From Orbicella franksi (Eukaryota), in the NCBI GenBank assembly GCA_964199315.1, contig OZ116699.1, forward strand, positions 38,192,001 to 38,256,000: a DNA stretch of 64,000 nt, in the 5' to 3' direction. Of the stretch, positions 39,004 through 63,857 are shown in pieces. The notes below the pieces were generated by a model. It worked only from the letters and a program-made list of their open reading frames with translations. It did no database searches and was not told the DNA's origin. The position numbers and the translations under genes were made by a program. Every line of letters starts with the position of its first letter. The stretch's first letter is position 1.

Positions 39004-41013
39004 CATCCTCACGTAATGTTTGCTTAGAGTCCTTAGGGCCGAGACCAAACCATGGTCCTGGGGCACTAGGGGATAGCCAGTTTTTAGCTTGATAGCACCC
39101 TCCTCAAAATGTGTGCTGTACCTAGCAAGGTTATCTTTTGTAGTTCACTGATGCTTAATTGGCCGGGAATTCTTCCAAGATAAGTTTCTAGTCCCTTTTT
39201 GATAGCTCCAAGTGCTCCAATGACAACTGGTATCGTTTCCGTTCTCATGCCCCACATTCGGCTTGTTTCGATTTCCAAGTCCTTATATTTGGATAGTTTT
39301 TCACTGACTTTTACGGATGTGTTTCTGTCTGATGGTACTGCCATGTCAATAAATTTACAGGTTTTCGTTTTGTGGTCTTTAATCACTATATCGGGTCTGT
39401 TGGCTGTTATTTTCCTGTCTGTGTGTATTGGCATGTCCCATAATATCGTGACATCCTCGTTTTCTGTAACTGTTTGCGGCTCATGGTCATACCACTTTTC
39501 TGATGTCTTTATATTATAGTTGTGACAGACTTTCCAATGTATATACGCGGCTGCTTTATCGTGTCTGTGGGTATATTCTGTTTTCGCAAGTTCAGGACAC
39601 CCAGACACGATATGGTCAATTGTTTCGTCGTATTTGTTACACATCCTACATAGGGGGCTAGTACCGTCTTTGATAATGCTGGCGTGGTATGATCTGGTAG
39701 CTAGGCTTTGGTCTTGGGCTGCGATTATGAATCCTTCCGTTTCTGCCTTCAGTCCACTGCTTTTGAGCCACTGGTTGGTTTTGTGGTGGTCAACATCTGC
39801 CTCCTTTATTCTCTTTGGGTATCTTCCATGTAGGGCTTTGTTCTCCCACTGCTTTGTTAATTTTTCTTGGGTCTTATTTCGTGCCATTTGTTTGGTTCTC
39901 TTTGCATATTTGGTGGTTGTTTCTTCTGCTTGTTTATCTGGTATTGTTAGGTCTAGTTCTTGTTTGAATTGTTCTGCTTGCCTTTGTATAGAGTACAATT
40001 TCTTTCTGCCATCATGTTCTTGCACTAGTTTGATTAGGGCATCATCAGTGTTCTTTAGGTATGTATCGAACCCTATCGTGGTTGTTTTGTAGGAGGCTTC
40101 TAATTGGATAAGACCCCTACCACCAGCATTTCTTGGGAGGTAGAGTCTGTCTACATCTGCTTTTGTGTGATGCATTTTTGATAGGGTGAGTAGTTTTCTT
40201 GTTTTTGTGTCTAACCTCTTGATTTCACTCATCTTCCAGTCGATTATGTTAAAACTGTAGGTCACCACTGGGATAGCTAAGGTGTTGATTGCCTCAAATC
40301 TATTGGCAGCGTTGAGCTCCGTTTTTAGGACCATCCTTACTCTGCGGTAGTATTCCTTCCTCACTCTTTCTTTCATCTTGGCATGCTGTATACCATCACC
40401 TTCATCCACGCCAAGGTATTTATATGTGTTCTCTTGGTCTAGTTCCTTGATACAGGTGTCAATGTCAAGTTGTAAATCGGAAGTTTCTGTCAGCTTTCCT
40501 CTTTTGAATGTGGCTTTAGCGCATTTGTCCAGCCCGAATTCCATCTTGATATCATTGCTGAATGTCTTTACAATATTGAGTAGGCCGGTTTGCTGGCTGT
40601 CACTTTTTGCATATGTTTTTAGGTCGTCCATATAAAAGAGGTGGCTGATTGTTCTACCCTGGGCTTCATACCCATAAGTGGTTGCCTTTAGTAATGAGCT
40701 CAGTGGAGCAAGGGCAAGACAGAATAGGAGTGGAGAGAGAGAGTCTCCTTGAAAGATTCCACTTTTGATATTGATAGGCCTTGATGTTATCGACCCTTCA
40801 GCGTGGTTGAGGTGTAACGTTGTCTTCCAACATTTCATGCTTTCTGCGATAAAGTTGACAGTCACAGGGCAGATCTTATAGATTTCCATGCACTTTATTA
40901 TCCACGTGTGAGGTACACTATCAAATGCTTTCTTATAGTCTATCCAGGCTGTGGATAGGTTCTTTTTCTTTGTCTTACAGTCCTCCAGAATCATCTTGTT
41001 TATCAGGAGTTGG

Positions 41014-41061
<48 letters not shown>

Positions 41062-44000
41062 TCGTCATAAAGACTCGCTCAGTGAACTTTTTTCGAAATA
41101 TATTGTATAAAAGTTCCGACGAGTTCATTTTTTTTCCTTGAGATCTAGGAAAGTTCAAATTATACAGTTGTATAATTTATTTATTTCCATTAAAAATCGC
41201 AAATTTACAATTTACCTACCCGCATATAGCGTATAGGCTAATCGAGGCGGTCATTGCAATAAATAGATATATAAATAAATAAATAAATATATATATATCT
41301 ATTAATGGATAGATAAATAAATAAATAAATAAATAGATAGATAAAAAATAAATAATAATAACAATAGTCACAATAGTTAATGTAATAAGCTCACAATAGT
41401 AACAAGTACAATGAGTCGCACTAGTGATAAATAGGACTAATTGGATGAAAGGAATTGTGAAATCAATCACGCTAGATGGCCTATGAAAATAAAGCATGTT
41501 CAATAGCTCAGTACAGATCAGAAAGACTAGAACTTTGACACATTGGACTGGATACTTAGTCTAATGTAAGGACTTTTCAGCTAGCAAAAAACTTGAAAGA
41601 ATAGTCATCCGCTTTGTCTTGGGCAATAGCGCCCTGGCCTCCGGCCGCCATTTTATTGTCACGCCGCTTAAAAGCTTGTAAATTCAAATACACTCTATTA
41701 CAAAACGAAGGAAAACTGTCGAGCTACTACTTTGTTATACGTCAAGTTGTGAAAACGTGTGCCGCCTAAAAGATCATTTTCAGTCATGCAAATCAAACTC
41801 TCAAGAAAAGTTTTGCCCGAAGACTTGTTTGGAAAAAAGAGGCACAAGGTAACTCGGAATAGCCTATCTTCTAAACCTCGAGATAGCTCACACTTAAACA
41901 TCAGTGGCCTCGAACTTGGAAATCTTACTAATTTTAATATCGTTTTCGTACCACGACCGCCGGTTTTTTATGATTGATACCACAGTCCTCGAGAAATCGG
42001 TGTGAACAGACGATCGTGCAGAGGATAAATAGTAGTTCTACATTCAAAATTTGACCAACTTTGATGACTTTAAAGTTTATTGTTACTTCTTTCTTGGTTT
42101 AAAATCTCCGGTTATTATTTTTCTTTTCTCTTTTAAAAGGGGGGAATCAAACTTGCAGTTTGTAACAATGTTGCAATGCAAACACTATTCTGAAGATGTT
42201 CTAATTAATTTTCAGGGTTTTTTTTGTGATAACCCAATTCGCGCAAAATTTTCTGAAATTCTAACGAGTGGCTCTCAAGAAAAAGGCGCATTTCCCAGGA
42301 ATAAATATTCGCTCATTACTGCGCAAGCTGACAAAGCGAGAGACTCTCTAGTGTTATGTTACAGGATCGATTTTGATTGTTTTAAAAACAATGAAAGTTA
42401 AATCCCATGATAATCGCAAGTTAATGAGTTACAATGAGGTAACAAGAAATAGTAGACAAAATTAAGCCACGTGCTTCTTTTTTTACTAACTTAGTATCCA
42501 TGAGCTGCATTTAACTTTGAACGAAAATTTGCAAAATGATTGTAGTAAAGGCTAAAAACCTGCAACACACTGTATAATTTTAGGAAGAAAAGTAGTAGAT
42601 ATAAAATTGACATGTAAAACGATTGCTGTACCAGGGTCTGTTTGACAAAATAAAGGAAAATTCGAATTTTGGTTCCCTTCGTGGAATTTTTATATTTACA
42701 GACAGGCGCTCTTAACTTTTGCTTATTTAATCAAGTTGTTTTCTTTAATTTTTTTTGCATTCGACTTTCGATCTCAACTTTTAATTTTTAACTTACAAAA
42801 TCGTCTTTTCGTTTAGATTTTCTACTTCCAAGTCGATCTTCGAATTTTAATTAATGATTTTGGTGGCTTCGCCCGGCCTCCGTAATAAGCAGACAGATAA
42901 GCATTTCACTATGAAAATGTACTTTAATGTGATTCAAATGCATTCGTTTCTTGTAAAGGTTCTTGTGGCACTCGCTCGAAATCAAGAATCGTCGGCGGTG
43001 TCAATGCTACACATGGCGACTGGCCGTGGCAAGTTCAGTTACGTCGTTCCGCTGTCGGTTCCCCTTACTGTGGAGGCTCCTTGGTGTCAGATCAGTGGGT
43101 GGTCACAGCCACTCACTGTGTCAGAGGAAAACAGCCCAGCTCTATCATTGTGAGGTAAAATATTGATACCCAAAACGGTTGTGTCATATAATTTTTTCTT
43201 TTATAGCGGAGCTCTGGCTGCCCGAAGAGCCGCCAAGCGGAGCCTCATACTCATGTGGGAAAGAAATGAATGGATTTCCTCATGGTTGTCATGGCTAGCA
43301 GTATTGGTGGTGGGCGCGTACGACGGCGGCGAAGTTGCCCAACATGGCGGCCACACTCCAGCTATTAGGTTGACAGAGACATGCAACCTTGGTTTATGGC
43401 GTCCGTCTTTAATACTGGATATCCATGTTATGGTCAATTGACACTTGTAAATGGTATCCGCAGACCAGTTCACGTGACCATTTAGCGGGCTCAAGTTAAG
43501 AGCTCACTGAGGTCACGTTTTTTTTTAATAGTTAACAAAATAATTTTTTTTTTTCTTGTATACAAATGCTTTTCATTTCTTTCGTTTTGTGTGTTGTGAG
43601 ATTATTCAAACTCAGAACAGTAGGCCGAACAACGAGTTAGCCGACAAATTACTAAAACTACAAAATCGCGCCATTAGGGTTATCACCAGGTCTGATTACT
43701 ATTTATAGTGCTACCGCCCTCCGCGGTAGGCTAGCATGGGATAATCTCTATATCAGAAGGAGAAAGGAAAAATTGAAATTAATGTTTAAAACTTTCAATG
43801 ATCAGTCTCCGGAGTTCCTGAAAGGCCTATTTAAACCATTCAGCACGGACTATGGACTTAGAAATAGTGAAAACAAATTGGCTCTGCCTAAGCCCCGTAT
43901 TGATATTTTGAAACGTAGTTTCTGCTACAGTGGGGCACATTTGTGGAATAGCCTTCCATCTAACGTCAGAGCCATTAGATACGAGATAAATCGCCAACTG

Positions 44001-47000
44001 TCCTCCTCATACTCCCACACGGCAAACAAGTAAATCAGTTTTTTTTTTTTTTTTTTTTTTTTGATATATCTCAATCTTGTAACTGATGTTTTTACGGTGT
44101 CTAAATAAAGTGTGTATGTATGTATGTATGTATGTATGTATGTATGTATGTATGTACCTCACCGCAAAGTTACAAACGAAAAAACTCAAAATTCTCGCTT
44201 GTCCAGGGTTGGTTTAATCGGGCTTTGAACAACCCGGTCCAGGAGCTCTGCTGTTAAGTTTGGCTAAACCTATATATTAGCTTTTTGATTTTACTTGGCT
44301 GTCGATCGAGTTCACAGAGTATGCAACCTACTTCAAAAAACTCTTTGGCATTGTCAAAATATATACATGTTATTGGCCGGCTTAGGGTCGGTCCGTATAG
44401 AGAACAAATTTATATCGAACTACTTTATGTTAGTTGCATTTAGTTCATCAGTTAAGTTCTCCAAAAGTGTTTTTTCGGTGTGAAATTTTGTACGAAGTTT
44501 GAAGTTGTACTACAAAATCAATCTCCGTCCGTCGTTGCGAATCACTTGAAATCAGACTTTTCTACCGTATTAAAATTGAATAGCAGAAAGCGAGGAAATT
44601 CGCTAAGTGTATGCCACAGAAATGCTCTCAAATACAGCAAAGATCAGAGAGGTACGTACGCTCGATTGGAATTGACTTGTTTTCTACTTAAAATTGTACA
44701 GAGAGAGATAAATAGGATTACGCGCCATTACAGCGCCGAGCTGCAAACAACTTCAAAACGCTCAATTGAATTTACTTACGGTGACTTTCCTTGCATTTAA
44801 AAGTGAATAGAGATAAACTTGCTTTCATTAATCATCGATGAAAGTGTGAAACTGAAAAGGTAATAGATTCATGATTACCGCTAATTCGTTCACGATTATA
44901 GATCAACGCGACGGGTTTCGCCCGCTGTGGCGGGCTGGATGGGAAAATTCCGCCCGCTCCCGTAACCAATCAGATTGTAGGATTTGTAGAATTCCGCAAG
45001 CTCAAAAGCTGAGAAAAAAATAAATGCACATTATTACTACCATGTTATTACCATATTATTATTGCCTTCAGCCTTGTTTCCGTTACTCCGATAGGTGCAT
45101 ATTGTGTGTTTAAGAATTAAAAAATAACAATCAATCAATCAAACAAGGAATATGTATAGCCATAGGGGCATACGAGCACCTTCGGACTCGACTGATCGAT
45201 CGACAGCCAAGTAAAATCAGAAACCCATAAAAGAAAAAGTTATTTCTTTCTCGTAGGAGCTTGGAGAGAAATTTTAAAACGCCGCCACAGAGCCCCCGCG
45301 ACAGCAAAAGTCTTGGTATTCGTTCGTTTCATTTCTATTGTCCTTGATTTGTTGATGAGAATTTGGGAATGGAAACAATATCCATATTGTGGATTTCCAC
45401 GATACACATTTAACCCATATAAGGCTTTTGCAAAACAAAACACCTCGATTCTTCATATCATTTGACTTTAAGTCCGTTTTGGCAAGACAAACGTAAGACT
45501 GAGGCTACAAGCCTTGAAAATTATTGGAATGTTTTATTCCAAGTGCTGTTCCCTGAATCATGAGCGTTTTTCCCGGAAAATGTTTAGACAGACAGCGGTT
45601 GAAAGTGAATAGCATTTAAAAAGTGTGACTGGATTAGTTTTTCATGGTGAATAATCTGGCAATGTGCTTTGACGTCATCTTCTGTTTCGGTGAAACCTTC
45701 GGTTACAAACAAGGCAACAAGTCAAGGTTGAAGATACTAGAAAACAAAACACAGACGAACTGGAATGGGTACGTTTAAAGGACTCGTGTTACTAGCCTTT
45801 GCTTCGTTCTTTAACATTGTTGACATTATTTGTAAAAGTGCAAGCAATAAACTATGTGGACAACTGGAAAAAGTTCTGCGACAGGACAAGCGCCGATTCG
45901 ATAAGTTTTGGTTAGGACTGTTCCTGAAGGGGAATTTAGACTTACCACACTAAAGAAAGGCGAAAATGCCATGGACCGATAAATAAAGGACTAAAGGAAG
46001 CAAGCAAGCAAGCAGGCAGGCAAGGAATGGATCGATCGATCGATTTCTTTCTCTCTTTCTCTCTTTCTTTCTCTCTTCCTTCCTTCCTTACTTCCTTCAT
46101 TGAGTCGTCAGTCCATGGTCAGTTTTCGTTAGTGTGACAATACTTTGAAGTTACTGTGTCATCAGCTACATTTTAATTTCTTGATTATCGATTGATTATC
46201 TGTTTCTTCCTTTTAAGACTTGGCGCCCACAGACGTGTTAATCTTGTTGGTACTGAACAGGACATTCAAGTAAGCAAAGTGATCACTCATCCATCTTACA
46301 ACAATCCGCTGAGCTACAGTAACGATATCGCATTACTTAAACTGGCAAAACCAGCTCAATTAAACAGGTCAGTTATTGCTCTAAACTCTTTATTGTTATG
46401 ATTTTCAACTTTGTTACCGATACACTTACGTTTTACCGTCTAAAAGTCTCCGGAAAGGCCAGTTCAGGTTCTTAGAACCTAAGAAGACTAGTCACGATGT
46501 ATAATTTGGGTATAAGATAACGTTAACAGTGTTACCCATGTTATTTTTGGTGACATATTTTCATGTTCTTTAAAGTGTACCTATTTCCAAAACGTTTCGT
46601 CGGATTATAGTATCTCATCATGAGCAGTATTTCCGCTATTTCAAGTTATTTTTCTTAGGCCTTGACAGCTCAAAATATCGAGGTTCAATTGTATTGATCG
46701 TACTGTAAAAAATGTCTAATCATCTGACAATCGAACTTGGCTTGATGAACTGGTGACTCTTAAGTTTCACTACCTTGATCACTGACGCGTGGAGCCATAA
46801 CGAAGCTGTTTACGTTGTCTCGCTTCAACCACTGTACCGTTGCATTGCACAAAATCATCGCTTCATGTATGAGCAGATTAAAAATAATCACTAAGTCAGA
46901 CCAGACATAAATTACTTAGGTGATCCAGGCTCTCCTAGTCAATAAAGCTTGGTTTCTGAGGTCTCACTATACCTGATGAAACAAAACTTTGCAATGGAAT

Positions 47001-50800: not shown

Positions 50801-52209
50801 TGCTTGTACAGCTCCCTGATTCTTATTCCCTGCCTTATTCACTGCCATCGCCGTGAAAAATTTAGAGAATCTCGCAACTCTCGCCATTTGGCATGAGAAC
50901 ATCCACGCAAGAGCCCACGACATTTGCGTGGATCCGCGCGGATATATGTTATCAGGGTGGCGCAATTTGTTCTAAAAATAGCAAAATTGTCCCATATCAT
51001 AGGTGCGCGCGGATCCCAAAACTTACGGTCTCCGTCCTCGATTATGACTCCTGATTAGACCTATAGTCTCCCAGTTTTTTTCGCTCATGCGAGTGGCCCC
51101 CTTAATGGTGGGACGGCAGATTTCACCTGACCATTTCTAAATGATCTAAAGCATTACCCTTTCAAATACGTGAAGTACTTTCTAGTTGCTCGATGCCTGT
51201 TCTCACACTGAGATAAAACGTACTTTTTGCCATGGTCACGTGACTGATGACACATCACACTAAGTTTGAAAAAAATATATATTTCATTGCAAGATTTATT
51301 TTTCCATATGTGGTACTCTCCCGGGCTTCAGTCATAAAGTTATTTGATATGCAAACTTTTCATGTGCAACGGTTGTTAATATAATTATAATATTGTTTTA
51401 TTATCATTATCATTGTTATTATCATCATCATCATCATCAGTTCGTATAGTGTGATCGTTCGGATTTCTAGTTCGGTGCATTCACCCGGACGATCACACTA
51501 TACGAACTACGAATACTCCTGGGTTCAAACCATTTACTGTGTTATCATCATCATCATTATTATTAAGAACTTGTGATAATTTCATGTTTATTTTACAATA
51601 ATACTAATAACTTTTTTTTAGAAAATTACAAACTTTAAAATAGCTAAAATTGTTATCATCACTTCTCTTGTTAAAACAATTCGCTTCTGCTTAGAAAACA
51701 TTTCCGCCTAGGAACGCACAACAGATCAGAAAGTTTGGTGTAATTAAGTGATCTTTAAGCAAGAGGTTCGTCTCACTCTATGCTATTCTGCTGCATTTTG
51801 CTTTCCGGTCTTCAGGTACGTAAATTTGGTGTGTCTTCCACATTCCGTCTCTGAACCGTCTGACGGGGCCAAATGCTGGATCACGGGCTGGGGCAAACTT
51901 TCATATGGAGGCGCTAGACCAGACTATCTCCAACAGGTCCAAGTTCCAGTGGTTAGTCGCGCCCGATGTGATAAAGCCTACCCAAAAAAGATCCATGACT
52001 CCATGATCTGCGCGGGCCTGGACCAGGGTGGAATTGACTCCTGTCAGGGGGATAGTGGAGGACCGATGGTGTGTGAGACTGGTGGGAGGTATTATCTTCA
52101 AGGTGTCACCAGCTGGGGCTCTAGATGTGCTTCTCCTGGGAAGTTTGGTGTCTACGCCAAAGTGAAATACCTGTTGAGCTGGATCGTTGGCGAAATGTCT
52201 AAGAACTAA
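9567..52209 (+). CDS. Secreted multi-MAM trypsin-like serine protease (signal peptide + 10 x MAM + peptidase S1A), 34 coding exons, predicted 1811 aa
   Basis: 46 + 10x465 + 196 + 150 + 394 = 5436 nt, with all phases compatible and all introns GT-AG. Activation site SKSR|IVGG, His motif TATHC, Asp motif NDIALL, Ser motif GDSGGP, and S1 Asp in GGIDSC. Confidence 0.9.
10266..10445 (+). mobile_element. Degenerate tRNA-derived SINE in intron 1
   Basis: TGTGGAGG start, A-box-like TGGCGCAGTGG, body CTGACCACTAGCTG shared with the copy at 50674, AT-rich tail. Confidence 0.55.
10607..12252 (+). CDS. MAM cassette 1 (exons 10607-10741, 11218-11459, 12165-12252)
   Basis: [25 protein letters not shown] / [19 protein letters not shown] / VTFEG..GDIAIDD..SC. 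Phases 1-1, 1-0, 0-1. Confidence 0.93.
11816..12130. mobile_element. Non-autonomous palindromic insertion unique to cassette 1 intron B-C
   Basis: Absent from the other nine cassettes at the AAATGCTT|ATCTT junction. 11966-12130 is a ~165-nt imperfect hairpin. Confidence 0.8.
12860..14182 (+). CDS. MAM cassette 2 (12860-12994, 13472-13713, 14095-14182)
   Basis: Same three-exon MAM, open frames. The exon C acceptor is GAAG here rather than GTAG. Confidence 0.92.
14791..16103 (+). CDS. MAM cassette 3 (14791-14925, 15392-15633, 16016-16103)
   Basis: Open frames, canonical splice sites, 4 MAM cysteines. Confidence 0.93.
16711..18023 (+). CDS. MAM cassette 4 (16711-16845, 17312-17553, 17936-18023)
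   Basis: Exactly 1920 bp offset from cassette 3, near-identical including introns. Confidence 0.93.
18629..20483 (+). CDS. MAM cassette 5 (18629-18763, 19238-19479, 20396-20483)
   Basis: Open frames. Its longer B-C intron carries an insertion. Confidence 0.93.
19782..20197. mobile_element. Non-autonomous element with a 150-bp palindrome (19783-19933) in cassette 5 intron B-C
   Basis: Inserted between GATAAATAA and TATGAATT relative to cassettes 6-10. Arms GGATGAGGTTTTTGTGATATCCAGAATAATCAAGGTCTCGGT / ACCGAGACCTTGATTATTCTGGATATCACAAAAACCTCATCC. Confidence 0.8.
20553..21070. mobile_element. Unclassified ~0.5 kb interspersed repeat, copy 1 (cassette 5-6 intron)
   Basis: Absent from other cassettes and homologous to 43203-44285. 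Terminal GC hairpin GGCGGCCC-CAA-GGGCCGCC at 20566-20584. Confidence 0.75.
21610..23112 (+). CDS. MAM cassette 6 (21610-21744, 22289-22530, 23025-23112)
   Basis: First type-II cassette ([20 protein letters not shown]), open frames. Confidence 0.93.
23706..25214 (+). CDS. MAM cassette 7 (23706-23840, 24387-24628, 25127-25214)
   Basis: Open frames, canonical splice sites. Confidence 0.93.
25817..27318 (+). CDS. MAM cassette 8 (25817-25951, 26495-26736, 27231-27318)
   Basis: Open frames, canonical splice sites. Confidence 0.93.
27913..29411 (+). CDS. MAM cassette 9 (27913-28047, 28588-28829, 29324-29411)
   Basis: 2093 bp offset from cassette 8 (exons B and C), near-identical including introns. 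Confidence 0.93.
30006..37330 (+). CDS. MAM cassette 10 (30006-30140, 36509-36750, 37243-37330)
   Basis: Open frames. Intron A-B is enlarged by a 5.8 kb LTR element. Confidence 0.9.
30735..33437 (-). pseudogene. Frameshifted Gypsy pol: RT - RNase H - integrase (gag and protease missing)
   Basis: [33 protein letters not shown] (RT). [24 protein letters not shown] (RNase H). HASHLG, DLFE, TDNGPQF, SNGKAE (integrase). Split over at least three frames. Confidence 0.92.
33439..34260. repeat. Very AT-rich insert with an internal ~80-bp direct repeat, possibly one end of a non-autonomous DNA transposon
   Basis: Starts CCCTTACCAAACCAAACT exactly where Gypsy RT breaks off. AAAATAGG...GGTGTT(T/A)AAACCTGTTTAAAACACT occurs near 33525 and 33850. 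A second terminus was not found. Confidence 0.45.
34930..36060 (-). mobile_element. 5'-truncated Penelope-like element (RT core plus thumb), frameshifted
   Basis: YLKDTTD..., [46 protein letters not shown], ending ...[17 protein letters not shown] with no GIY-YIG after it. Confidence 0.88.
37398..37485 (+). CDS. Extra (terminal-type) MAM exon C', alternative to 37243-37330
   Basis: tgtag|[29 protein letters not shown]|gtaagt. 88 nt, phase 0-1, 67 nt downstream of exon C10. Confidence 0.75.
37498..38596. repeat. 90-bp inverted repeat pair (37498-37587 / 38507-38596) enclosing MITE-like sequence
   Basis: 7 mismatches in 90 nt by eye, no clean TSD. Confidence 0.8.
39004..41015 (-). mobile_element. 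5'-truncated R4/Dong-clade (RLE) non-LTR retrotransposon inserted in a (TAA)n microsatellite
   Basis: Uninterrupted 636-aa ORF (39084-40994): [35 protein letters not shown] (CCHC), RPDIV..ID..K RLE nuclease. Flanked by (TTA)n at 38972-39003 and 41015-41061. Confidence 0.92.
41270..41360. repeat. (TAAA)n / TA-rich simple repeat
   Basis: Direct inspection. Confidence 0.8.
42959..43154 (+). CDS. Protease exon 1 (activation peptide, IVGG, catalytic His)
   Basis: (S)[64 protein letters not shown](R). Phase 1-2. Confidence 0.95.
43203..44285. mobile_element. Unclassified ~0.5 kb repeat, copy 2, interrupted by a LINE tail
   Basis: 43203-43632 and 44156-44285 align to 20553-21070. Confidence 0.75.
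43633..44155 (+). mobile_element. 3' end of a CR1/L2-group LINE with (ATGT)n tail
   Basis: [11 protein letters not shown]..., [36 protein letters not shown] at 44104 followed by (TATG)n. Confidence 0.88.
46218..46367 (+). CDS. Protease exon 2 (catalytic Asp)
   Basis: [49 protein letters not shown](R). Phase 2-2. Confidence 0.95.
47728..48171 (-). mobile_element. tRNA-headed SINE-like retroelement: 1.4 tandem copies of a 252-bp unit plus an inverted 71-bp segment, with a 13-bp TSD
   Basis: TSD ATAACGTTCTTAC (47728-47740, 48159-48171). tRNA-like cloverleaf at 47815-47886 (-). 47942-48012 is the exact reverse complement of 48090-48160. Confidence 0.85.
48668..51355. repeat. Old ~230-bp inverted repeat pair (~48668-48900 / ~51130-51355)
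   Basis: Roughly 75% identity by eye, e.g. AGTCACGTGACCATG and its complement CATGGTCACGTGACT. Confidence 0.65.
50674..50809 (+). mobile_element. 3'-truncated tRNA-derived SINE
   Basis: A box TGGCCGAATGG, B-box-like GGTTCAATTTCC, body shared with the copy at 10266. Confidence 0.7.
51439..51543 (+). mobile_element. Hairpin remnant, probably a Penelope-type 3' end with inverted arm, inside an (ATC)n tract
   Basis: Perfect 20-bp arms at 51439-51458 and 51489-51508, followed by ...ACTCCTGGGTTCAAACCATTTAC. The family assignment is from recollection only. Confidence 0.5.
51816..52209 (+). CDS. Protease exon 3 (catalytic Ser, stop codon)
   Basis: YVNLVCLP...CWITGWG...[20 protein letters not shown]...[18 protein letters not shown]...SKN*. 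AATAAA at 52252 and 52315. Confidence 0.96.
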
Positions 52210-53217
52210 GCTAAATCAACCCGCGATAGTTTCGTAATGGTGTAAGGTAAAAATAAATTCTCCATGCTGGAGATAAGGAAGAACATTAAATAATGTGGTC
52301 GGGAAAAAATTAGTAATAAAAGCATGCATTAAAGAGAAACCTGTGTGCAATTGTAGTCTTTTAAGTCCTGACCTAAGTTAGTGACTATAATCTAAGAAAC
52401 ACGTATTTCCTCGCTTTTTATTAATTTACTAACTTGTAGAGCACTTACAGAAGGTCTAAAAGGGGATGCTGAATGCAACCATCTCTATGCTGTGAACAAA
52501 TTAACACTGAGGCGATCGTCTGAAATTTCAGTTGACTGTTATATACGCAAGTGACTAACTTAACAATCTTTAAAACCAATCAATCAATTAATTGCAAAGA
52601 CCAACCAAAACTTTATCTTAACCAAACAATAATGAATCAAATTCACTTCTCGGTAGTTCCATTTTGTGATTTTATCTATCAGCCGATATTATCTACAACG
52701 GGAAACAAGTGTAAAGTGTTCACCTGTTTTTGGAGGGGCGGATGGCATTTATTCATGCCATTTCAGGTGTGCTTCTGTAACATGGATAAAAATAATGGGT
52801 GTATGTATTGAATGAGCACTTTTAAAGTGTGTGCCAACTGTATTTTTGCATAAGTGCGAATGAATTAATACATTTCGAAATTTTGACATTATTTATCCAC
52901 TATCGTAGATTTTCCATTTTCTAATGACGTCGGGAAATCATTAGAACTGAATCAAAATTAATGAAAACGTATAGTGACAATAGAATTCTTGGCAATAAAT
53001 CTAATACAACTGGTGTAAAAACATCCAAATAGAAAACTGCACAGGAAATCAAAAATATGAACAAACATACCCATTGCATAGTTACCGTGAAAAAACTATT
53101 TTCCTTTCACAAGATTTTGCGACACCAAAATTGTAAGTACCCAGATAAACTTTAGGTAAGAAACAAATTTGAGATTCTACTCTTAAATAGACAGTGTTTG
53201 CTGGTAAAAAATAATAC

Positions 53218-53719
53218 AAGTGAATATATGAAAGATCATTATTTGAAATGCGGGGAAAGATATGAAGAAATGATTGATCATCACAGTTATGTGCACAACC
53301 TTAGCAGCTGTGAGACTCAAGTCATGTCTTCATATCTTTCTCCGCAACTATATTAACTTTCATACATTCAACTGACCTCTGTTATTCGAAAGGTGGATAA
53401 TGCTATCCACCGGATAAATCACTATCCAGCGGATAGCGTGGTTTGTTTTGTTCACACTTATCCACTGGATAGCGATTTATCAGGTGGATAGCGTTATCCA
53501 GACTTCGAACAACTGGGGCCTGAATCTTATCCATGTATGGGTATATTACGAACTTTCACGTTACCAGTTCCCGGTTGGCTTGATAGCTTAGTTGGTAGAG
53601 CACTGCAGTGGTATCTAAGAGGTCATGGGTTCGAAACCCGTTCAAGCCTAAATTTGTCCAGGCTTTAGTTTCACAGCAGAGCTGATTAAGCTGTGTATAT
53701 AACTGCGACGATCAATCAT
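53218..53719 (+). mobile_element. Second, older tRNA-headed SINE-like unit with inverted 5' arm, interrupted by a palindromic MITE (53372-53520)
   Basis: tRNA-like 53577-53648 (GGCTTGA...TCAAGCC). 53218-53272 is inverted relative to 53322-53370. The MITE has GGATA-rich internal palindromes and ends TTCGAACAACTGGGGCC. Confidence 0.75.
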
Positions 53720-54231
53720 AAAGGGAATTGAAGCCATAAACTTCATTTTTTCAGCCGGAAAAAAAACCTGATTTTCCCATGGCAACCGTGTTATGACAGC
53801 CATGTTTTTTAACGGATTAGGAATTTCATTTTTCCCAATGAAAAAAATATATTTCTGAGGTAACTGTCACTTAGCTTTCGTTATCAGGTTTGATTATTTT
53901 TGGACCAGTTTTGGTGGTTTTCGGATGTGTTGATAGATTTATAATGGTAATAGGACTGAGTGGAGTCCAGTTCGGTCTGTAATCATACGAGTGATTAAAG
54001 AGTTTAAGCATAAGGTTTACGGCGGACGGCAAACGGCAAAGATTACCTCTGATTTTTTATTCTACTCTTGTAATCCTTAAATTAATCACACAAAAATATA
54101 AAAAAATGTCTTCTACTATTCACCGCAAATACAAAGATTCTCACTCTACTGTACAGATAGCTGAAGACAGACGGCAAAAGTTTCATTTTTGCCATTTGCC
54201 GTTTGACGCGTTACGTCATGGTCTGAATAAG

Positions 54232-54416
54232 GTTCCCATATGGAAAGGACGTGGGTGCTCCTCGGACATTTTTAAAAGAACCCCTAAGATGTACCAAGAT
54301 CCTGTTTTGTGGGCGCTGTGGAGCTCTTGAGGCTGAACACCCTGAGATGTACCAAAACCGATTTTTAATTCCTAAAAGGTACGACGACCACCTCCGTCCT
54401 TTTCATATGGGAGTTT
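54232..54416. mobile_element. Short MITE
   Basis: CCCATATGGAAAGGACG ... CGTCCTTTTCATATGGG inverted ends. A related fragment lies at ~6480-6520. Confidence 0.6.
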
Positions 54417-54598
54417 CCCCCCCCCCCACCCCCCCACTCGGCGAATAAGGTTTACGCGGCAGACATTAAAGGATGACATTCAGTGCCCCATAAATAGAAC
54501 TCAGTTTGTAATCTAGTTAGACTGTGAGCAGTCCCTTTCTTTTCCTAGCCTGAGAGAAGGGCATAATATCAACTGACTTCCGCGCGCGGAGGATTTAA

Positions 54599-55694
54599 GA
54601 GGCTGTCTCTGTAAAAACCGACCACTGATTTTAATTCGAAAATTCGATTTGTTCAGTTCCCAATCTTCCCGTGAGTATCACATCGTTGATTCCCGTTATA
54701 CTCACGGGAAGATTGAAAACTAAAACGCCTGTGGTAAACACAAAAATGGCCGTGGCATTTATCAATCCTTCCTTGGCTCCCCGGATCACCGTTTACTGTT
54801 CATACATGTATGTGTGCCGAGGGTTGTCTAAAAGAGTCCTTCTACAAACCTTTCAAGAGGACTCTACATGATTAAACCGGCTTCGAGGAAAACAATGGTC
54901 AGTAATACAAAAATCGAACTATGTGATCGTCACGCTCCACACAGATGAAGAACGTATAAACGTACTTTATATACAAGCCTACAGCTGGAAGGAAGAGCTG
55001 GCAGTTTTAATGCTACCTACAGGTTTCAAGGATCGCTACAAACGACCAAAACTTTAATCTTGAAGCCAGGTAAGAGATTTACCTGAATTTATCGGAGCAC
55101 TTTACGAAGGCGAGTGTGTTAGTTACTCGCTGGAATATTTTCAAAATTTCCTGAACTTTAAGCGGTCGTTAGTTTTGAAAACCTAGTGGGCAGACACAAT
55201 TTTATTATTATTTTAAATCAAGCTGGGACATTTATACTTTCTATTCATGTAGTTCAGCAGTTTCAAACAGGTGCCACATTTTTAAAACGTGTCTTCAAAG
55301 TAGAGCTATTTTTGCGTTTGGTTCAAAACTCGATTTAACGGGTAGAAAATCTTCTTTTGACCGTTGAAGGAACAACATTGAATTATAATTGCAACATGGC
55401 TAAACAGACTGCTATGATATATCTATAGTTGAAAACAAAGAATTGGGACTTTTGAGCGAATATCAATTTTTTTAGAGCGCCGGCAATATGTGCTATTTTT
55501 CCAGTTTCGGCCGGCATGCAACTTGTGTCGAGAAGACCGAACTTCAATCAATCCTAGAAAACTTCAATTAGAACTTTTAATCAAATAAAACTCATTTTAA
55601 TGATTGACTAGGTCAGGGCTTCGAAATCCCAGCTTATGAGAAAAATCGAATTTTCGAAGTAAAATCAGTGGTCGGTTTTCACAGAGACAGCCTC
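54599..55694. mobile_element. Non-autonomous DNA transposon with TTAA TSD and GAG...CTC termini (Sola3-like; Kolobok is the alternative)
   Basis: TTAA at 54595-54598 and 55695-55698, ~52-bp TIRs with 2 mismatches, no transposase ORF. Confidence 0.85.
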
Positions 55695-58509
55695 TTAAGG
55701 AGCAAAAACCGACTACGCGTAGTCTATAATCGAGTCAATGAGTTTTGCAAGGAGGAAAGGTTTTCTTATTTGCATGATGGCAGTGCGACTGTTGTAGTCG
55801 TCGGAAATGACAGGGTAAGCCTGTTGTAACAAGGGAAAATTTAGGACAAAAGAACTCGAAAAGGGGCGTAACTTAAGCTGCGTTCATACTTGGTGTTTGA
55901 GCGCTAGTTCCCGGTCACCGGCAGAAAATAGTGTTGCATTCAGATACTGGAACTCCAAGTACCCAAGTACCATACAGTGCCTGAGTACAAGGTCGAGACC
56001 GTGTACTCAGGCAGGGACACAGTGCCCTAATACTGGTGTAAGTGTAAAAGCTGGAGAAAAGGTGTGTTGACAATAGTGTCCAGCGAGAATTGTACTAGAG
56101 TAACGTGCTCGGGCACTAAGTGGCATCTTAACCTTAGAAATAATGGTCTTGAAGCTAAAGGAGTGCTAGGTGATAGGCTAATGGTAAAATTGTTGTGTTT
56201 CTCAATTTTTTGTTACCTTATAATAGGCTGTTTCTCTTACTTCAATTAGTTCTGCTTAAAATGTAACAATCAAACATCCACGTGATATATAACAATGACG
56301 AATTTTAGCATAAGACCGTATTTCTGTAAATTGTTTAATTCGTGTTTAATTGTTTATTCGTTCTTGATAGAAAAAGCAGATTTTCCGTTAGTCCCAAGCT
56401 GGTTTCTCTAATTTATTTACAAAATTCAAAATCTCGCTTAAACATAAATGCTAATTCAAAACTTCAAATTTGCATGCGCAGAGACTCAAATGTTTTACTT
56501 ACTGGGAGGTGACAGGAAAAAATGCAACGATCAGCGTAAAAATTTTCAAAAAAGTGAAATATTTGTTTACAGATAGAATTTTTATGTCCTTACCCGAGAA
56601 GAATTGTTCATCAATTAATTAATTTGACTTCAATCAATTCAGGACAGGGTGAGTGGTCGGGGGCAATTCTTTGTACCCCTATAGAACGCATTGCTGATCA
56701 CGTGGGGACGCGGAGTTATGTGTCATTCTTCAGTGTAAAAGAACGTGGAAAATTTTACGCACCTCCGCCCCTCGCCTTGTCCTCATGTTCTTCTATTTGG
56801 CCTTTTTTGTGCCCTCACCCTTACTGGGTTGAGTATTTTTATGTAGCCAATGTGGTTAAAGTATTTTTTATAAACTTATTTTGTATACTATTTAATATGT
56901 GATTCTGTTTATTACAATAAATGCGGCTATGGGCTCTTCCCATAGCCATTTTGACCCACATGGTATCTGCGTTTCATAACCCAGTAAACGGAGCTCAGCC
57001 AATACAGTACCCCAGGTTTTTAGTAATATAAACGAGGGAAAGACAAAGATGAATACCTTAAAAAAGCGCTTGGTTACCACTACATTTTATGTTATAAAAT
57101 GGAAGTGGCAAGCCTACTAGTATTCAACACGTGATTAGTTTCTGGTTGTGAGGAAAAGCTATTTAGACTGTATTTTAGCTGAGCCAGAAGAAGGCTTTCA
57201 GAGACGCTAAAAGCGCTGTTGCGACGATTTTGTCATTAAAAACATTCCAAAAATTACTTTTATGTTACCTTTTACCAGGTAGCTTTAAGATGTTTAGGAT
57301 TTGTTTGCATTTCCTTACGTAAAGCCGAATTCTAAGGAAATTTGTAAAGAAATATCCTTTCCTTCCTTTTTCAGAAAAAAACGCTTATGTCTGCATTTTT
57401 GTTGAGATTCAAGGCTAATTATCTCGAAAAAATGCTTGCTACCCCTATTTGTCTTTGTGGAGTCCAGTAGCCCTTACAAAGATCTACTTTTCTGGATGGT
57501 CCTAATCTGGCACAAAAACCTTTGTATTTAGTAGGTCAACTGTTACATGATGATTTCAAGTGACTTTGAATTTATTATTTACTTCAGTGTATTATTAAAA
57601 CTCGCATTTTTGATATTATTTGGCCTTGTATATTGATAAAAATGATAATCAAATGACTTTTTCAGGGAATATTATTTATTTGCGCCCTGGCAGTGTCATT
57701 TGCTCGGGCCGCAAAAGACACTACATGAGCTCAAATAAACAATAGTCCCTCAAAAAGTAATTTATTCCTTTATTAACTGGAAATACATCCCCGATTTCGC
57801 AAGAAGAATTAAGAATTAAAACTACTACACTGGTTGGTCTGGCGCCGTGTTCTGAGTAGCCAGTTGAAAGGTGAACGATTAAGGTTGTGAAAGAACCAAA
57901 AGAACAACCACCATAATAGAACTTCATCACAAAACACTTGTCAATGATGCCGGTTGTACGGGACGTCAATTCTTGAACCACTGTTTGGTCAAATTGCTTA
58001 GTTAACCTTGCAAATATAGTAACCCGACTAACTTTGCCTGCCATAAGACCGATGCAGGTGGGCACGTACATTTACGAAAAATGCCAGTGGCAATTTAAAT
58101 TTTGAGGGAACTTTCTCTTTTTTTTTAACCAACTTAATAAATGTAGAAATATCAGCACCACCACCAACCACCAACACTTACTTTGACGTGACTAGTTTAG
58201 AAGTGTAACGTAAACTATCCGAAGATTCGATTCTCCTTTTATCTCAAGGACATTTCTCTCCTTTCTATACTGTTCTCAATTCTGAAGTAAGGCTAATTCT
58301 CTAAACGGACTTTTTCAGTATTAAGCAAAATATGTTAGTGACCACAGCTACGAGGAGAATGAAAAACCACAATTGTCACATAATTATCTTTTCAATGCCT
58401 TTATTAATTATCCCCACAAATTTCCACTATTTTCTTCAACATCTTCAAGAAGAAAAAATTAAGATTTAACTCGATTATCACTAAAAAAACCATGGCCGGT
58501 AGGGTTTGG

Positions 58510-61500
58510 TTAGTTCTTAGACATTTCGCCAACGATCCAGCTCAACAGGTATTTTACTTTGGCGTAGACACCAAACTTCCCAGGAGAAGCACATCCATAG
58601 CCCCAGCTGGTGGCGCCATGAAGATAATACCTCCCACCAGTCTCACACACCATCGGTCCTCCACTATCCCCCTGACAGGAGTCAATTCCACCCTGGTCCA
58701 GGCCCGCGCAGATCATGGAGTCATGGATCTTTTTCGGGTAGGCTTTATCACATCGGGCGCGACTGACCACTGGAACTTGAACCTGTTGAAGAATGTTTGG
58801 AGTGGCTCCACCGGAAGCAAGTCTGCCCCAACCCGTGATCCAGCACTTGGTACCGTCTGTTGGTGCGGGGACGGAATGAGGAAGACATACCAGATTTACG
58901 TACCTGAGAACAAACGAAAAAAGACAAACCAGATTGAGGCGTCTAACAAACGGGAAAGAAAACGTAGCAGAGTCGCAGAGACAGGTGGCACTTCTTGTCT
59001 AAGCTGAAAGGAAAACTGAGGAAATAATGACGGCTTTATTTACTACAAACTCCAGGAAATAATATTTGTCATAAATTTAATGTTAAAAAGCTTGGAAAAT
59101 TCACTAGAGTAGAATCCCTTCAGTAAAGTAGAGCAAGTCTAATCTACATGTAAGGAAAACCTAAATTAAGTTCTGTTCTTCTTATAACAGCGTCGCCCCG
59201 GTGAACATTGATTCTGCCGTCACACCTGTGTTAAACTAAAGTAACTCGATCGTTACTATTAACCCATGAATGCTCGTGTGTGTGCGTGACTAATTTATGT
59301 CTGCCATCGCTAAAAACGTGAAGATAAAATAGACGTACATGACGGAAGACGTTAATAATAATGATAATAATATACAGGCTCTTAATAAAAAAAAGCATTA
59401 TCTTTATATATATATATTTTGCTTTTGTTGTTTTCTATTTGTTTTGGTTTTGTTTTTTGCTGTTATTGCTGCTATTTCTATTCTTTGTTTCTAGTGTATT
59501 TCAAAAATTTAAATTCATCTGTTGACGTGCTTTTTAAGGTGTAATTCTATAATGTAATTATACATAAAAATTCAAATGTTCAATCGCCGAACATTTGCAA
59601 CTGGAGATGACATAGAAATGTTCAGACACGTTTTGTAAATTGAGAAATGTTGTCTCATTTTCTAAACTTGCATCTTGGAATTATATCACGCACTCTGTAA
59701 AGAGCCCCTTAAACCTGGTACCAGTTTTCTCGCGCGGGTAGTAGATCATCGTAGTGCGTCACGCGTGAGTAACACGCACGATAGAGGTGCGAGATTTAAA
59801 ACCCGAAAGACCAAAACAAATATGGCGGCGCGCGGCTTTTTTCGCGCAAGGTTACTTTTGTGCTGTTGGAGACGAAATTCGCATATAAAGGAGGCTTTAC
59901 CTGCTAGAACAACTTAAGTCAACTCTGTGTTTTTAAGAAAAATTGTTTCGGGAATTCAATGTTTCCCAAATTTCAAAGGCAACTCGATCGATCGTGACAG
60001 CCACCGGGAGCGTATAAAGGACTCGCAAAACATAGCAAATCTACCCAGAATTTGTGTAAAAATCCTACAAAGAAAGCCCAGGAGGTTGTCTTAAACGACA
60101 ACTACAACTGTAAATGATGTTTTAGCAGCAAACAAAACAGAACGCCCGTTCGGAGCCCGCTCGCCCGCGCGGGCACACGAAGCAGTCAGCGGTAGTCAAA
60201 ACGGCTCATGAGCAACTGCTGATCTTATAAAGTCTGGATTTTTGAATGCGTGTCTACGCGCGTGGGAATAACGGAACTCGCGAAGGCTTTTACATGAAAA
60301 CAAGCCCGGTGACCCCTTCTTTTTATTGTTTTAATATAATATTATCATTGAGAAGAAACGTCAGAAAAAACTAAAATATCCTACGGAAGGAAATTTGTAC
60401 TTTGTGCAAATTGCCGTTTTACCAAGTTTACAAGAAATCGGCTCCGTAAAATTATTTTAAAATTGTTGTGCATTTTCATTTTCAGATGCCAAAAGTTATT
60501 GACTGAAAAAAACTCGGGGTCACTGGGTTACTTTTTGAGTTATTAGTGACATAAGCGAAAAATCAGGTCTGGAAAATCCTTTTGGAATGTTGCCATGGTA
60601 ACTGCTGACGACAAAATAACAACTCTTTTAGTTCAAGTATAAATTATGTAATCCAAACCTACAAAAATATTACAGTGGCCCTGGTCTGTCTTTTTGCTCT
60701 ATTCTCACAAAGTTATGAGCCGTCAAAAACCTGAAAACTGGTGCGAGCCACCTTAAACGTAAAGGTGTTGTAGCTCAACTAGAATTATTGGTTTTATAAT
60801 AAGCAATTACTTTTAATGCGTATTTTTACTCTTGAGCATTAGGAGTCAGGTGCAATGAAAGCTCTGCCCCTTTCTCCGCCTACTTTTTTGTTCCATTATT
60901 TTGTATAAGTAAACATTAGTAAGAGGCAGTCAAATAAACGTAAAGTTACATATAAATAAGCAAATATCGTAACAACGAGAAGTTCAAAGTGAAATACTAA
61001 CCTGTTTAATTGAGCTTTTTTTTCCAGTTTGAGTACTGCAATATCGTGACTGTACGTTGTCGGTTTGTGATACGATGGATGAGTTATAACTTTGCTTACT
61101 TTGATGTCCTGCACATTTCCATCAGTGTTAGTACGATAGTGGGCGCCAAGTCTTAAAGTTAACGATCAGTTGCTTAATTAAATTAGTGGTCGATCCATAG
61201 ATTGACTGACTGACTTAATTAATCAATCAATCAATCAATAAATGATGGATGATTGATTCATTTAAAATTCATTCATTTACACACCCAATAATTCATATTT
61301 TTTATTCATTCATTTGTTGGTGCTTAAATTACCTTATATACGAATTAGTCTCACACTAGTTCTAATCACATCAGGCAATTTATTGCGGTAACACTGGCCA
61401 ATTAGAAGGAAAGTAGTATATTTCATCAGCATCTTACATTATACTATCTTGCCAGTCGTGAACTATGCACGCTAAATTTGCTTCTGTTCCAAAAGGGAAA

Positions 61501-63857
61501 CTACAATTTAAGACGGATGCCGCCCAAATTTCGAGCAATAAGTGCAAAAATTATTTACTAACAATCTGCTTACAGCATGGTAACTTTTTGAATACTATTT
61601 AAAACATCCCACCTTGATTCATTTCTCTAGGTGACCCCGCGATTAAATCCCAAAGCATTCTCGAGAAAGCTAATGTCAAACGTCGTAAAAATGTTTAATG
61701 CGTGCGTTATTGTGTTTTTAACTAACGGGAAACGTCCATTTTAATGGAAATATGGATAACTTCAAGTTCAATTTTCTCTCGCGGGGTAAGCTTGAAAGTC
61801 TTCTTACCTTTATTCAAAATATTACCATGCTATGTGTTTTGTTTTTTTTTCGTAACTTTATTTTCGCCATTATTGCTCGAATGTTCTGCGGAAATCATCT
61901 TAAATATCTGCAGTAAGATGCCTAGTTTCCATAGAAACAGCAGAGTGAGACCATGTTACGACTGACGACTCATAGAAAGGAAACCTACAGTAAATCACGG
62001 CTTTGATATGATATCGAAAAAAAATATTAGTTGTTTTTGGACTTTATGAAACTTCCAGAATACAGCCCTCTCATTTTTTCGTATAGGTTATTTTGAATCC
62101 AAAAAGCAGTACCAATTTAATTCGTCTATGCCAACTATATTTCTTGGTTCTATATAACTACTCTCGTAATTCTCACCCACAACGGAAAAAGTTGGGTTGT
62201 ATGATAAATAACTTGCCATACATTTTGCTCGACAGAAGTATCTCCTACTTCCGTTTGTAAGATATTATTAATTCCAGTGTTTCTTTTTGGCATGTAGTAG
62301 TTTACCTTATGATTATAGAGCTGGGTTGTTTTCCTCTGACACAGTGAGTGGCTGTGACCACCCACTGATTTGACACCAAGGAACCTCCGCAGTAAGGAAA
62401 ACCGGAAGTGGTACGTAACTGAACTTGCCACGGCCAGTCACCACGCTTAGCGTCGACACCACCGACAATCCTGGTAGGTGGGCGGATGCCGCAAGAACCT
62501 TCAAGAAAAAGTAGACGATAGCATTTTGTTTAAATTACGGTACGAAAATCTTAAAGAGCATTGGTTTGCAATCTAGACGATTCACCTTCGGATGTGGATT
62601 GTTTGCATTGCAATCTAAAGTTGGTTTGGCCACAAATGAAACGGGGAATCTTATTTCCGATCAGAAATATCTTGGTTAAAAGAAACGCTGACTTTAATTT
62701 AAAAACGGTTGTGTAATTATTGGAAGCATAATGCATGGTTCAACTGGTGGCTGCCTTTTGATACAACAGCCAATCGCGAACTCCTATCCATGAATCCTCA
62801 GCAATGCCGCTAACGAGAAAATGCTAAATTGTAAAGGCAATAAAAATTTCATTCTGTCCCTCAGTTAACATTTAAACTTAATTAGCTATGCTCCGCTCTT
62901 TCAAATATCCTGGACTTGGAGTGATTTCTTTCGAATAAATGAGAACTTCATTCAGCAAGTTTCCGCCGTGTTTACTTGCCGAGATGGCATAGATGGCTAG
63001 CTTAGTAACCATGCTCTAGCGGGGTGAATGTCACACGTCATATGATGAGCTTATCGACCAATCAGAATGTCCAATTCTTATATTCACCTCTGAAAATTAT
63101 ACTAATGTTTATTGTTTATAATTTAAAGAGGGGCAGGATAAACATTTTAACAAAATGAATCGCAAACAAATAACAGGTCAGAAGGAATACTTTCTCAAGT
63201 AATTCTGTGAAGTGCCAATGAGCATATTTATTCATAGCAGTTAATGCCTATTCCCTGAAGCGGACTTACATCAGTTCTTACGAAAGATATGATGACTGTG
63301 CTAAAAGAAATTCCTACCTGGTGGGGGTGGGGAACCGGGTGTTGTTGGAGGTGGCGGAGTTACTGCAAAATAACAAGAGGCAGAAGCAACTTAGAGGATT
63401 GGAAAAAGCTGTTTATTTATTTATTCTTTATTTATTTATTTATCTATTTATCTATTTATTTATTCTTTCTTTATTTCTTTATTTATTCTTTATTTGTTTT
63501 ATTTATTTATTTATTTATTTATCTATGTATTTATTCTTTATTTATTTGTTTCATTTATTTACTTATTTATTCTCTGTTACCCGTTTATGTTCTGATTGCA
63601 GTTCCTAGGCCTTCTTTGTGTCGTTTTTTTTCTGTTTGTTGGCATGCTGTTGCTAATTTTGAGGTTACATGTGCGCTAGCTTGTTAACAATTATCAATTG
63701 GAAAACGATAAGAACCTGAATAATTTCGTGAGATACGAAACATAGAAATTTAACTTGTTACAGACTTACTTGATAAACATCTTCCTGGGGTTAACAGGAA
63801 ATCGTCTATTGCTATGTCACCCTTCCAACTTGTTCCCGTTATTCCCTCAAATGTAAC
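58510..63857 (-). CDS. Paralogous MAM-trypsin gene, 3' part (MAM exon C 63770-63857; protease exons 62306-62498, 61002-61151, 58510-58903); continues beyond the window
   Basis: [29 protein letters not shown] / SCGIRPPTR|IVGG..TATHC / HDIAVL / GDSGGP..SWGYGC..SKN*. Same exon phases as gene 1. AATAAA on - at 58400-58405. Confidence 0.93.
59709..60756. mobile_element. Possible old TTAA-type (Kolobok-like) non-autonomous element
   Basis: TTAA-anchored degenerate inverted ends sharing CCAGTTTTC / GAAAACTGG. Confidence 0.35.
63412..63570. repeat. Degenerate (TTTA)n simple repeat
   Basis: Direct inspection. It generates the spurious F/I/Y/L-rich ORFs here. Confidence 0.9.

Follow-up and report, generated by a model that had tools for sequence, protein, structure and literature searches.

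Probable recent gene conversion between two tail-to-tail genes for putative trypsin-MAM proteases of the coral Orbicella franksi

Gene conversion between linked paralogues, with short islands spared, is already well described. Exon 5 of the human red/green opsins and the model of Teshima and Innan show how divergence peaks stand out in duplicates under conversion (Teshima & Innan 2008, PMC3924837), and in the copepod Tigriopus californicus the pair GOT1p1/GOT1p2 is a mosaic of exon regions of low and high divergence that is attributed to conversion (PMC3728101). Among proteases, the trypsin-MAM clade is reported to be expanded in anthozoans, with tandem duplication as one mode of diversification (Babonis et al. 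2019, PMC6767649); the term "gene conversion" does not occur in the text of that study. Here we describe two protease genes, denoted A and B, in a window of 64,000 nucleotides from Orbicella franksi (assembly GCA_964199315.1, contig OZ116699.1, positions 38,192,001 to 38,256,000). The last exon of B is a mosaic that very probably arose when interlocus gene conversion recently carried sequence of A into B, either as two tracts or as a single discontinuous one.

Genes A (+ strand) and B (- strand) are convergent and lie tail-to-tail, with 6.3 kb between their stop codons (52210-58509 of the window) and homologous, diverged 3' untranslated regions (UTRs) at both ends of this spacer. The last exon of A (51816-52209, +; 394 nt including the TAA; Pfam Trypsin, expect value (E) 1.9e-39) encodes Asp189, the GDSGGP motif with Ser195 and the loop 214-220, by a residue numbering that we take from motif alignment to enteropeptidase/trypsin and from general knowledge. 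The last exon of B (58510-58903, -; 394 nt), covered by DNA and RNA contigs, runs from B-type to A-type, back to B-type and again to A-type sequence and would be the recipient of the exchange. Below, "index" denotes the position within the 394-nt last exon.

A mosaic of low and high divergence in the last exons

The two last exons align without gaps and differ at 36 of 394 positions, 27 of which fall at index 0-114 and 9 at index 115-393. At most they stay identical over 116 consecutive nt (index 169-284, that is 51985-52100 in A and 58734-58619 in B). Five of the 9 late differences, at index 285, 288, 290, 305 and 307, lie in a ten-residue segment at the substrate-binding loop that reads HGATSWGYGC in B, forming a divergence peak of five differences in 23 nt between flanks with 0/116 and 1/86. 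On direct count these figures agree exactly with those of an initial annotation of the window, which had also placed five of the nine late differences in the loop. In 20,000 permutations the clustering of differences gave p = 5e-5 for the longest run and p < 5e-5 for the maximum chi-square; with third codon positions alone the values were p = 0.007 and p = 1e-4, respectively.

Synonymous divergence (dS) between A and B follows the same division. It is 0.98 at index 1-123, falls to 0.058 at index 124-285 and 0.06 at index 310-390, and is 0.46 in exon 2, while orthologue dS over those last-exon segments is 0.13-0.36. The exon 2 background for A-B is 33 differences in 150 nt, within the 32-43/150 of all pairs among A and its paralogues B, C and D. 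Beyond the low-divergence part the two genes differ at 23% of the 5' 124 nt of the exon and by 24%, with indels, in the 3' UTR. At the stop codon, where the initial annotation had noted an abrupt end of identity, identity drops from 85/86 to the background level of paralogues. Its further statement that the UTRs are unrelated does not hold, since within their initial 150 nt an alignment of 134 nt shows 76% identity, with z = 8 relative to shuffled sequences. The 5' breakpoint, which it had put at index 115, is placed by diagnostic sites between index 123 and 132, where A-B similarity drops to 77%.

Paralogues were found by searching the 497-Mb genome with the exon. Paralogue C is a compact gene whose introns measure about 430 and 600 nt; it lies on the - strand at contig positions 38157685-38159429, 34 kb upstream of the window. 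D is 6.4 Mb away, and F and others are more distant relatives. A GENECONV-like permutation test on five paralogues returned two globally significant fragments, each with p ~0.0005, one between A and B (exon 3 index 124-392) and the other between B and C (exon 2 index 144 to exon 3 index 315). This A-B fragment and the contrast in segment dS, together with the site patterns and segment trees below, support the patchy conversion sparing the loop region that the initial annotation had proposed.

To polarise the differences we used orthologous open reading frame (ORF) fragments from other coral assemblies, retrieved by protein search and assigned by their intron-encoded leaders. They comprise the A orthologue P0001 and the B orthologue P0004 of species Y, the B orthologue P0011 of species X and the C orthologue P0014 of species Z; two further A-like fragments, P0008 and P0010, were compared as protein only. 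The orthologous flanks, which serve as a neutral yardstick, align at 81-91% and therefore confirm the assignments. The 116-nt block is free of differences between A and B, whereas A shows 6 against its orthologue and B shows 6 and 11 against its two. Over the final 86 nt A and B differ at 1 site, while A departs from its orthologue at 5 sites and B from its own at 10-14. Fifteen to sixteen sites at index 0-123 show the orthology pattern and none the concerted one, while sites of the orthology pattern are absent from index 124-284 and 308-393; the site-pattern contrast between the 5' part and the tracts is significant (Fisher p = 2e-6).

Within the tracts B carries A-lineage states at seven sites, index 132, 150, 272, 361, 362, 372 and 384, and derived states common to A and B are found at index 370, 371 and 373. 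The codon at index 361-363 is AGC in A, the A orthologue and B, and CCN in both B orthologues, C and F. Maximum-likelihood (ML) trees agree with the site patterns. For the 5' part a clade of A and B is rejected (approximately unbiased (AU) test, p 0.002), whereas for the tracts A and B group with support 94/93, inside a clade with the A orthologue (89/94), and the AU test rejects a grouping of B with its own orthologues (p 0.00014). Each 3' UTR groups with the orthologues of its own gene, and A keeps its own states in the tracts. The polarised sites and the tract tree thus indicate recent copying of A into B after the split from species Y, and the exchange appears to have been non-reciprocal, with A as donor and B as recipient.

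The diagnostic sites delimit the segments as follows. Tract 1 has a maximal extent of index 124-284 (51940-52100, + strand of A; B partner 58779-58619) and a minimal extent of index 132-272 (51948-52088), set by the A-lineage states in B at 132, 150 and 272. It is followed by an island in which B appears unconverted, minimally index 285-290 (52101-52106, +; B partner 58618-58613), covering the codons of residues 210-212; the island could reach over index 273-360. At index 285, 288 and 290 B equals the species-X orthologue, at 288 and 290 also that of species Y, and A equals its own orthologue. Tract 2 (52177-52209, +; B partner 58542-58510) rests on the A-lineage states at 361, 362, 372 and 384, with a minimal extent of index 361-387 and a maximal one of index 291-393 (A 52107-52209; B 58612-58510). 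Its 3' end falls between index 387 and the first UTR base, at most 6 nt from the stop codon.

The course of events that we infer is this. A and B would be old paralogues of the anthozoan trypsin-MAM family, arranged tail-to-tail, and after the split from the corals that supplied the orthologues, last-exon sequence of A would have been copied into B by non-reciprocal homologous repair. B would now be A-derived at about index 124-284 and about index 291/361-393, having retained its own sequence at codons 210-212. Homology-dependent repair is expected to leave tracts that end where homology is lost; the tracts here appear to halt where A-B similarity collapses, which would fit homology-limited heteroduplex formation. 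The discontinuity might reflect two events or patchy mismatch repair of a single heteroduplex, and the Ser217/Arg219 pair found only in A would either belong to the unconverted island or be later than the conversion.

A second patch of low divergence covers the His57 motif (A 43078-43145, +; B ~62382-62315), with 2 differences in 68 nt of alignment. The initial annotation had noted this patch, which proves real, with B coordinates shifted by one base. Over the final 77 nt of the His exon A and B differ at 6 sites, as do B and its species-X orthologue; A differs from that orthologue at 11, and A and B differ from C at 21-26. The patch would be an older or unpolarised affinity between A and B.

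Alternative explanations for the mosaic and its polarity

An assembly in which A reads were collapsed into B would also give B an A-like exon, and the 116-nt identical block lends itself to such an error, being unphaseable in short-read graphs. We checked gene B with Logan contigs (k = 31) and gene A by word share. Contigs of one RNA run and of three DNA runs, the latter from two labelled organisms and a coral metagenome, show 0-1 differences from the B exon; separate contigs from independent runs carry index 132 and 150, both A-type, together with the B intron, and join the B 3' UTR to tract 2, the island and index 272. The splice joints of the RNA contig match the exon model, and the A version is whole too: its loop and UTR stretch, an A-specific 3' sequence, has a share of 1.00 in 20 runs, polyA RNA-seq among them. 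We therefore reject the chimera that the initial annotation had raised, which we consider extremely improbable, on the strength of contigs from independent runs that carry the mosaic and of these word shares. Two private differences of B from A are not constant among the runs: run X2 lacks the one at index 348 and run X9 the one at index 168, so that A and B are even more alike in those samples.

Purifying selection on the nucleotides themselves, through codon usage, RNA structure or splicing signals, would keep A and B alike with no conversion at all, and conservation of the central block in C and D as well (6-8 differences in 116 nt) is what such constraint would produce. Yet constraint should hold orthologues at least as close, and they are less alike than A and B are: orthologue dS in the blocks is 0.13-0.36 against 0.06 for A-B. 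F differs from A and B at 23-25 sites of the same block, C and D differ from them at 24-26 sites of the last 86 nt, and the A-lineage codon in B (AGC against CCN) involves more than one nucleotide. Given the synonymous differences of the orthologues and of F, we reject nucleotide-level constraint, which we rate very improbable.

The direction and age of the exchange are a further point. It might have run from B into A, or the likeness might stem from a reciprocal crossover or an ancient chimeric origin and not from recent conversion, and an old chimeric layer does exist: the B orthologues stand beside the A clade, nearer the A lineage, in the 3' segment and beside C, nearer the C lineage, in the 5' segment, so that B has long been a mosaic. 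The A orthologue of species Y moreover shares "NS" (index 370-374) with the B orthologue of that species, which hints at an exchange of B into A there. In the recent layer, however, all seven polarised sites are A-lineage states in B, no tract site has a B-lineage state in A beyond changes private to A's orthologue, and the tract tree nests B within A and the A orthologue. A reciprocal crossover of inverted copies would in addition swap the flanks, while each UTR groups with its own orthologues. We consider these other directions and origins improbable.

Several points weigh against the reading of a recent conversion of A into B. The central block had been taken as a signal between A and B, and its identity in the two is real; it is not specific to them. 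C differs from A and B in these 116 nt at 6 sites and D at 8, so that pairs among A-D all lie between 0 and 8 differences, and the block is therefore weak evidence, taken alone, for an event specific to A and B. The A-C dS in the block is 0.17, against 1.0-1.4 in the flanking segments. The near-identity of this GDSGGP block (51985-52100) in A-D thus suggests an older, family-wide homogenisation, and part of the A-B identity there probably reflects it. At the 3' end, the A and B orthologues of species Y are fairly alike (8/86), hence part of the 3' affinity of A and B predates the species split. The polarity is drawn from one A orthologue, covering the last two exons, and only two B orthologues, all of them short or ORF-anchored fragments. 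The island amounts to three sites, of which index 285 is homoplastic across paralogues. Finally, contigs of k = 31 cannot phase through the middle of the identical block; their graphs break nowhere but inside it, which is expected at that word length.

The 5' part of the exon adds a further layer. B and C differ there at 5 of the first 115 nt, A and B at 27, and B is C-like at the 5' side and A-like at the 3' side. A recent conversion of C into B is possible, since B and C differ at 5 sites and B and its orthologues at 8-10, but the states in which B agrees with C might be ancestral should species X and Y prove to be sister species.

The relation of these exchanges to orientation was also considered. 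B and C show their affinity in the same orientation, about 92 kb apart. In species X the B orthologue (L019:18850-19330, -) lies tail-to-tail with the C orthologue (L019:10001-10504, +) at 8.4 kb, and no B-C conversion tract was seen in this pair. Inversion is therefore not required for conversion, and the species-X pair lacking a tract led us to discard the idea that tail-to-tail proximity as such promotes it. The fold-back conversion that the initial annotation had proposed from the inverted orientation of A and B may have taken place, but it need not be invoked. As the B orthologue of species X has the C rather than the A orthologue beside it, the gene order of the cluster differs between species. 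The last exon of the species-X C copy carries a 4-nt deletion and a 13-nt insertion, so this copy is a pseudogene or an assembly error.

The substrate-binding loop and possible selection on it

The loop differences are of two kinds, only one of which would represent sparing by conversion in the sense of the initial annotation. At index 285, 288 and 290 B-type states seem to have been left unreplaced. At index 305 and 307 the changes are private to A: two substitutions (52121-52123, +) turn TAT GGA into TCT AGA and give Ser217 and Arg219. Nearly all relatives have Tyr-Gly at the positions of these Y217S and G219R changes. A 20-mer with the Ser217/Arg219 motif occurs only in A in the 497-Mb genome at up to 1 mismatch, with no second copy; a search for a donor elsewhere in the genome thus found none, and the single-copy motif has to be a new mutation, not one brought in from another gene.

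As the initial annotation had proposed, selection for distinct substrate preferences may have kept A and B different at the island and at the Ser217/Arg219 pair of A, as a divergence peak of the Teshima-Innan type on top of a real conversion. Several observations would fit. Over the C-terminal 90 residues A and B differ in amino acids only at 210, 212, 217 and 219, and 4 of the 5 loop nucleotide differences are non-synonymous. SWGYGC is almost invariant in about 20 coral relatives, yet within the A-like lineage the pair at 217/219 varies (YG, DS and SR). A has also changed elsewhere: its private changes are mostly non-synonymous and cluster at index 52-101, in the 140s loop, and against its own orthologue the ratio of non-synonymous to synonymous divergence (dN/dS) at index 1-123 is ~0.5, compared with 0.04 for B. 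The changes in the 140s loop and at Ser217/Arg219 are compatible with functional divergence of A, although the numbers are too small to show selection. Over 8 codons dN/dS is uninformative.

The case for a selected island involves only a handful of sites, and these admit simpler readings. Residues 210 (Q/H) and 212 (V/A) alternate freely among the paralogues, and of the island sites one is synonymous; plain unconverted DNA may be all that the island represents. Only 2 nt separate the changes at index 305 and 307, which could stem from a single later multinucleotide mutation. Selection for different preferences is for these reasons possible but rather unlikely. A stronger version, in which the changes in the 140s loop and at Ser217/Arg219 were giving A a new subsite specificity while A kept overwriting B, with the island as a selected barrier preserving B's ancestral specificity, appears slightly less likely still.

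If the island is selected, the pair offers a compact natural experiment on S1 specificity at residues 217-219, and if the barrier reading is true, it would show, in a protease cluster of a cnidarian, how a gene can neofunctionalise despite conversion pressure. If the island is not selected, the locus is an example of ordinary, well-documented paralogue evolution.

Gene structure, surroundings and comparison with known systems

Upstream of the last exon of A, the first protease-domain exon (42988-43154, +, from IVGG to the donor), identified by tblastn, translation and splice context, encodes His57 in TATHC and matches Pfam Trypsin with E 1.3e-15; by homology its true start lies about 30 nt upstream of 42988. 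The second (46218-46367, +; Pfam Trypsin) encodes Asp102 in NDIALL. In gene B, the second protease-domain exon (61002-61151, -) was delimited by joints of an RNA contig, which also covers the first (62306-62500, -; IVGG from 62469) and an upstream exon (63320-63451, -) joined to it. The splice joints of this contig at 58901/61000 (cut +2) and 61151/62306 coincide with predicted exon borders, and its loose end maps to 63320-63349, so that the upstream exon ends at 63320. At its 3' end this exon encodes a proline-rich, linker-like stretch. Both genes are represented in RNA runs, and the A loop and UTR are whole in polyA RNA-seq from several studies.

The Peptidase S1 family profile PF00089 matches three exon pieces of A and the last exon of B (E 1.9e-39 to 2.2e-8), which jointly cover profile positions 1-220. 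TATHC, (N/H)DIA(L/V)L, GDSGGP, GIDSCQ and R-IVGG are all present in the translations of A, B and C, giving each a predicted catalytic triad His57/Asp102/Ser195, Asp189 at the base of S1 and an Arg-IVGG activation site. In a protein search the named relatives are sea-anemone trypsins, with about 65% identity, and the sequencing runs in which the stretch occurs bear labels of corals or coral metagenomes; both agree with an anthozoan, most likely stony-coral, source. Upstream of A, B and C, MAM-domain exons are found on the same strand as the gene (blastn, Pfam), their link to the same transcript being judged from position; the exon triplets upstream of both A and B suggest that the two genes belong with the anthozoan trypsin-MAM proteases, as far as domain content can tell.

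The upstream part of gene A is an array of MAM-domain exon triplets (10599-37496, +; blastn against paralogues, Pfam MAM in three exon pieces). It comprises about 10 units of 2.0-2.1 kb with three MAM exons each (10599-30444 and 36267-37372), the last of which is split by about 5.8 kb of GC-richer DNA (30444-36267). By self-BLAST the units at 21.6-30.4 kb are 93-98.6% identical including introns, which points to recent tandem amplification or homogenisation. A 636-amino-acid ORF with a reverse-transcriptase-like FYMDD motif (39084-40994, -), flanked by simple repeats at ~39.0 and 41.0 kb, sits in the intron that separates the last MAM exon of A from its first protease exon. The gene B introns hold high-copy repeats at 59700-60830 and 61450-61925, with a summed contig depth of hundreds to thousands against ~20-40 in unique sequence.

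A and B add a clean new example of conversion in a cluster of trypsin-MAM genes, one that is polarised and supported by independent reads. The clustered trypsin-MAM protease genes of this coral evolve as mosaics, and trees built from whole domains of this expanded family will thus blend different histories; without masking of the tracts, the last exon will yield false orthology calls and dates. Like the members of the trypsin-MAM clade, A and B would combine a trypsin domain with MAM domains; they differ from the clade as described in that their MAM exons form long arrays, of about 10 or more triplets in A.

Among solved structures, the last exon is best matched by the catalytic light chain of enteropeptidase (PDB 7wqw, 4dgj, 1ekb; E 4e-35). 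This too is a trypsin-like S1 domain with Asp189, and the enteropeptidase parent protein also carries a MAM domain. Identity is moderate, with FGYKC in the enteropeptidase loop against SWGSRC in A and SWGYGC in B, and implies no orthology.

The copepod GOT1 genes are, like A and B, an invertebrate pair whose islands are perhaps selected and perhaps not. They were studied in population samples, while for A and B single haplotypes were compared and polarity comes from orthologue fragments of other species. The red/green opsins share with A and B the arrangement of linked paralogues homogenised except for a short stretch around differing amino-acid sites. For the opsins a functional effect of the spared residues has been measured, and conversion there extends into introns, whereas in A and B the tracts lie within one exon, around an island of 6-90 nt.

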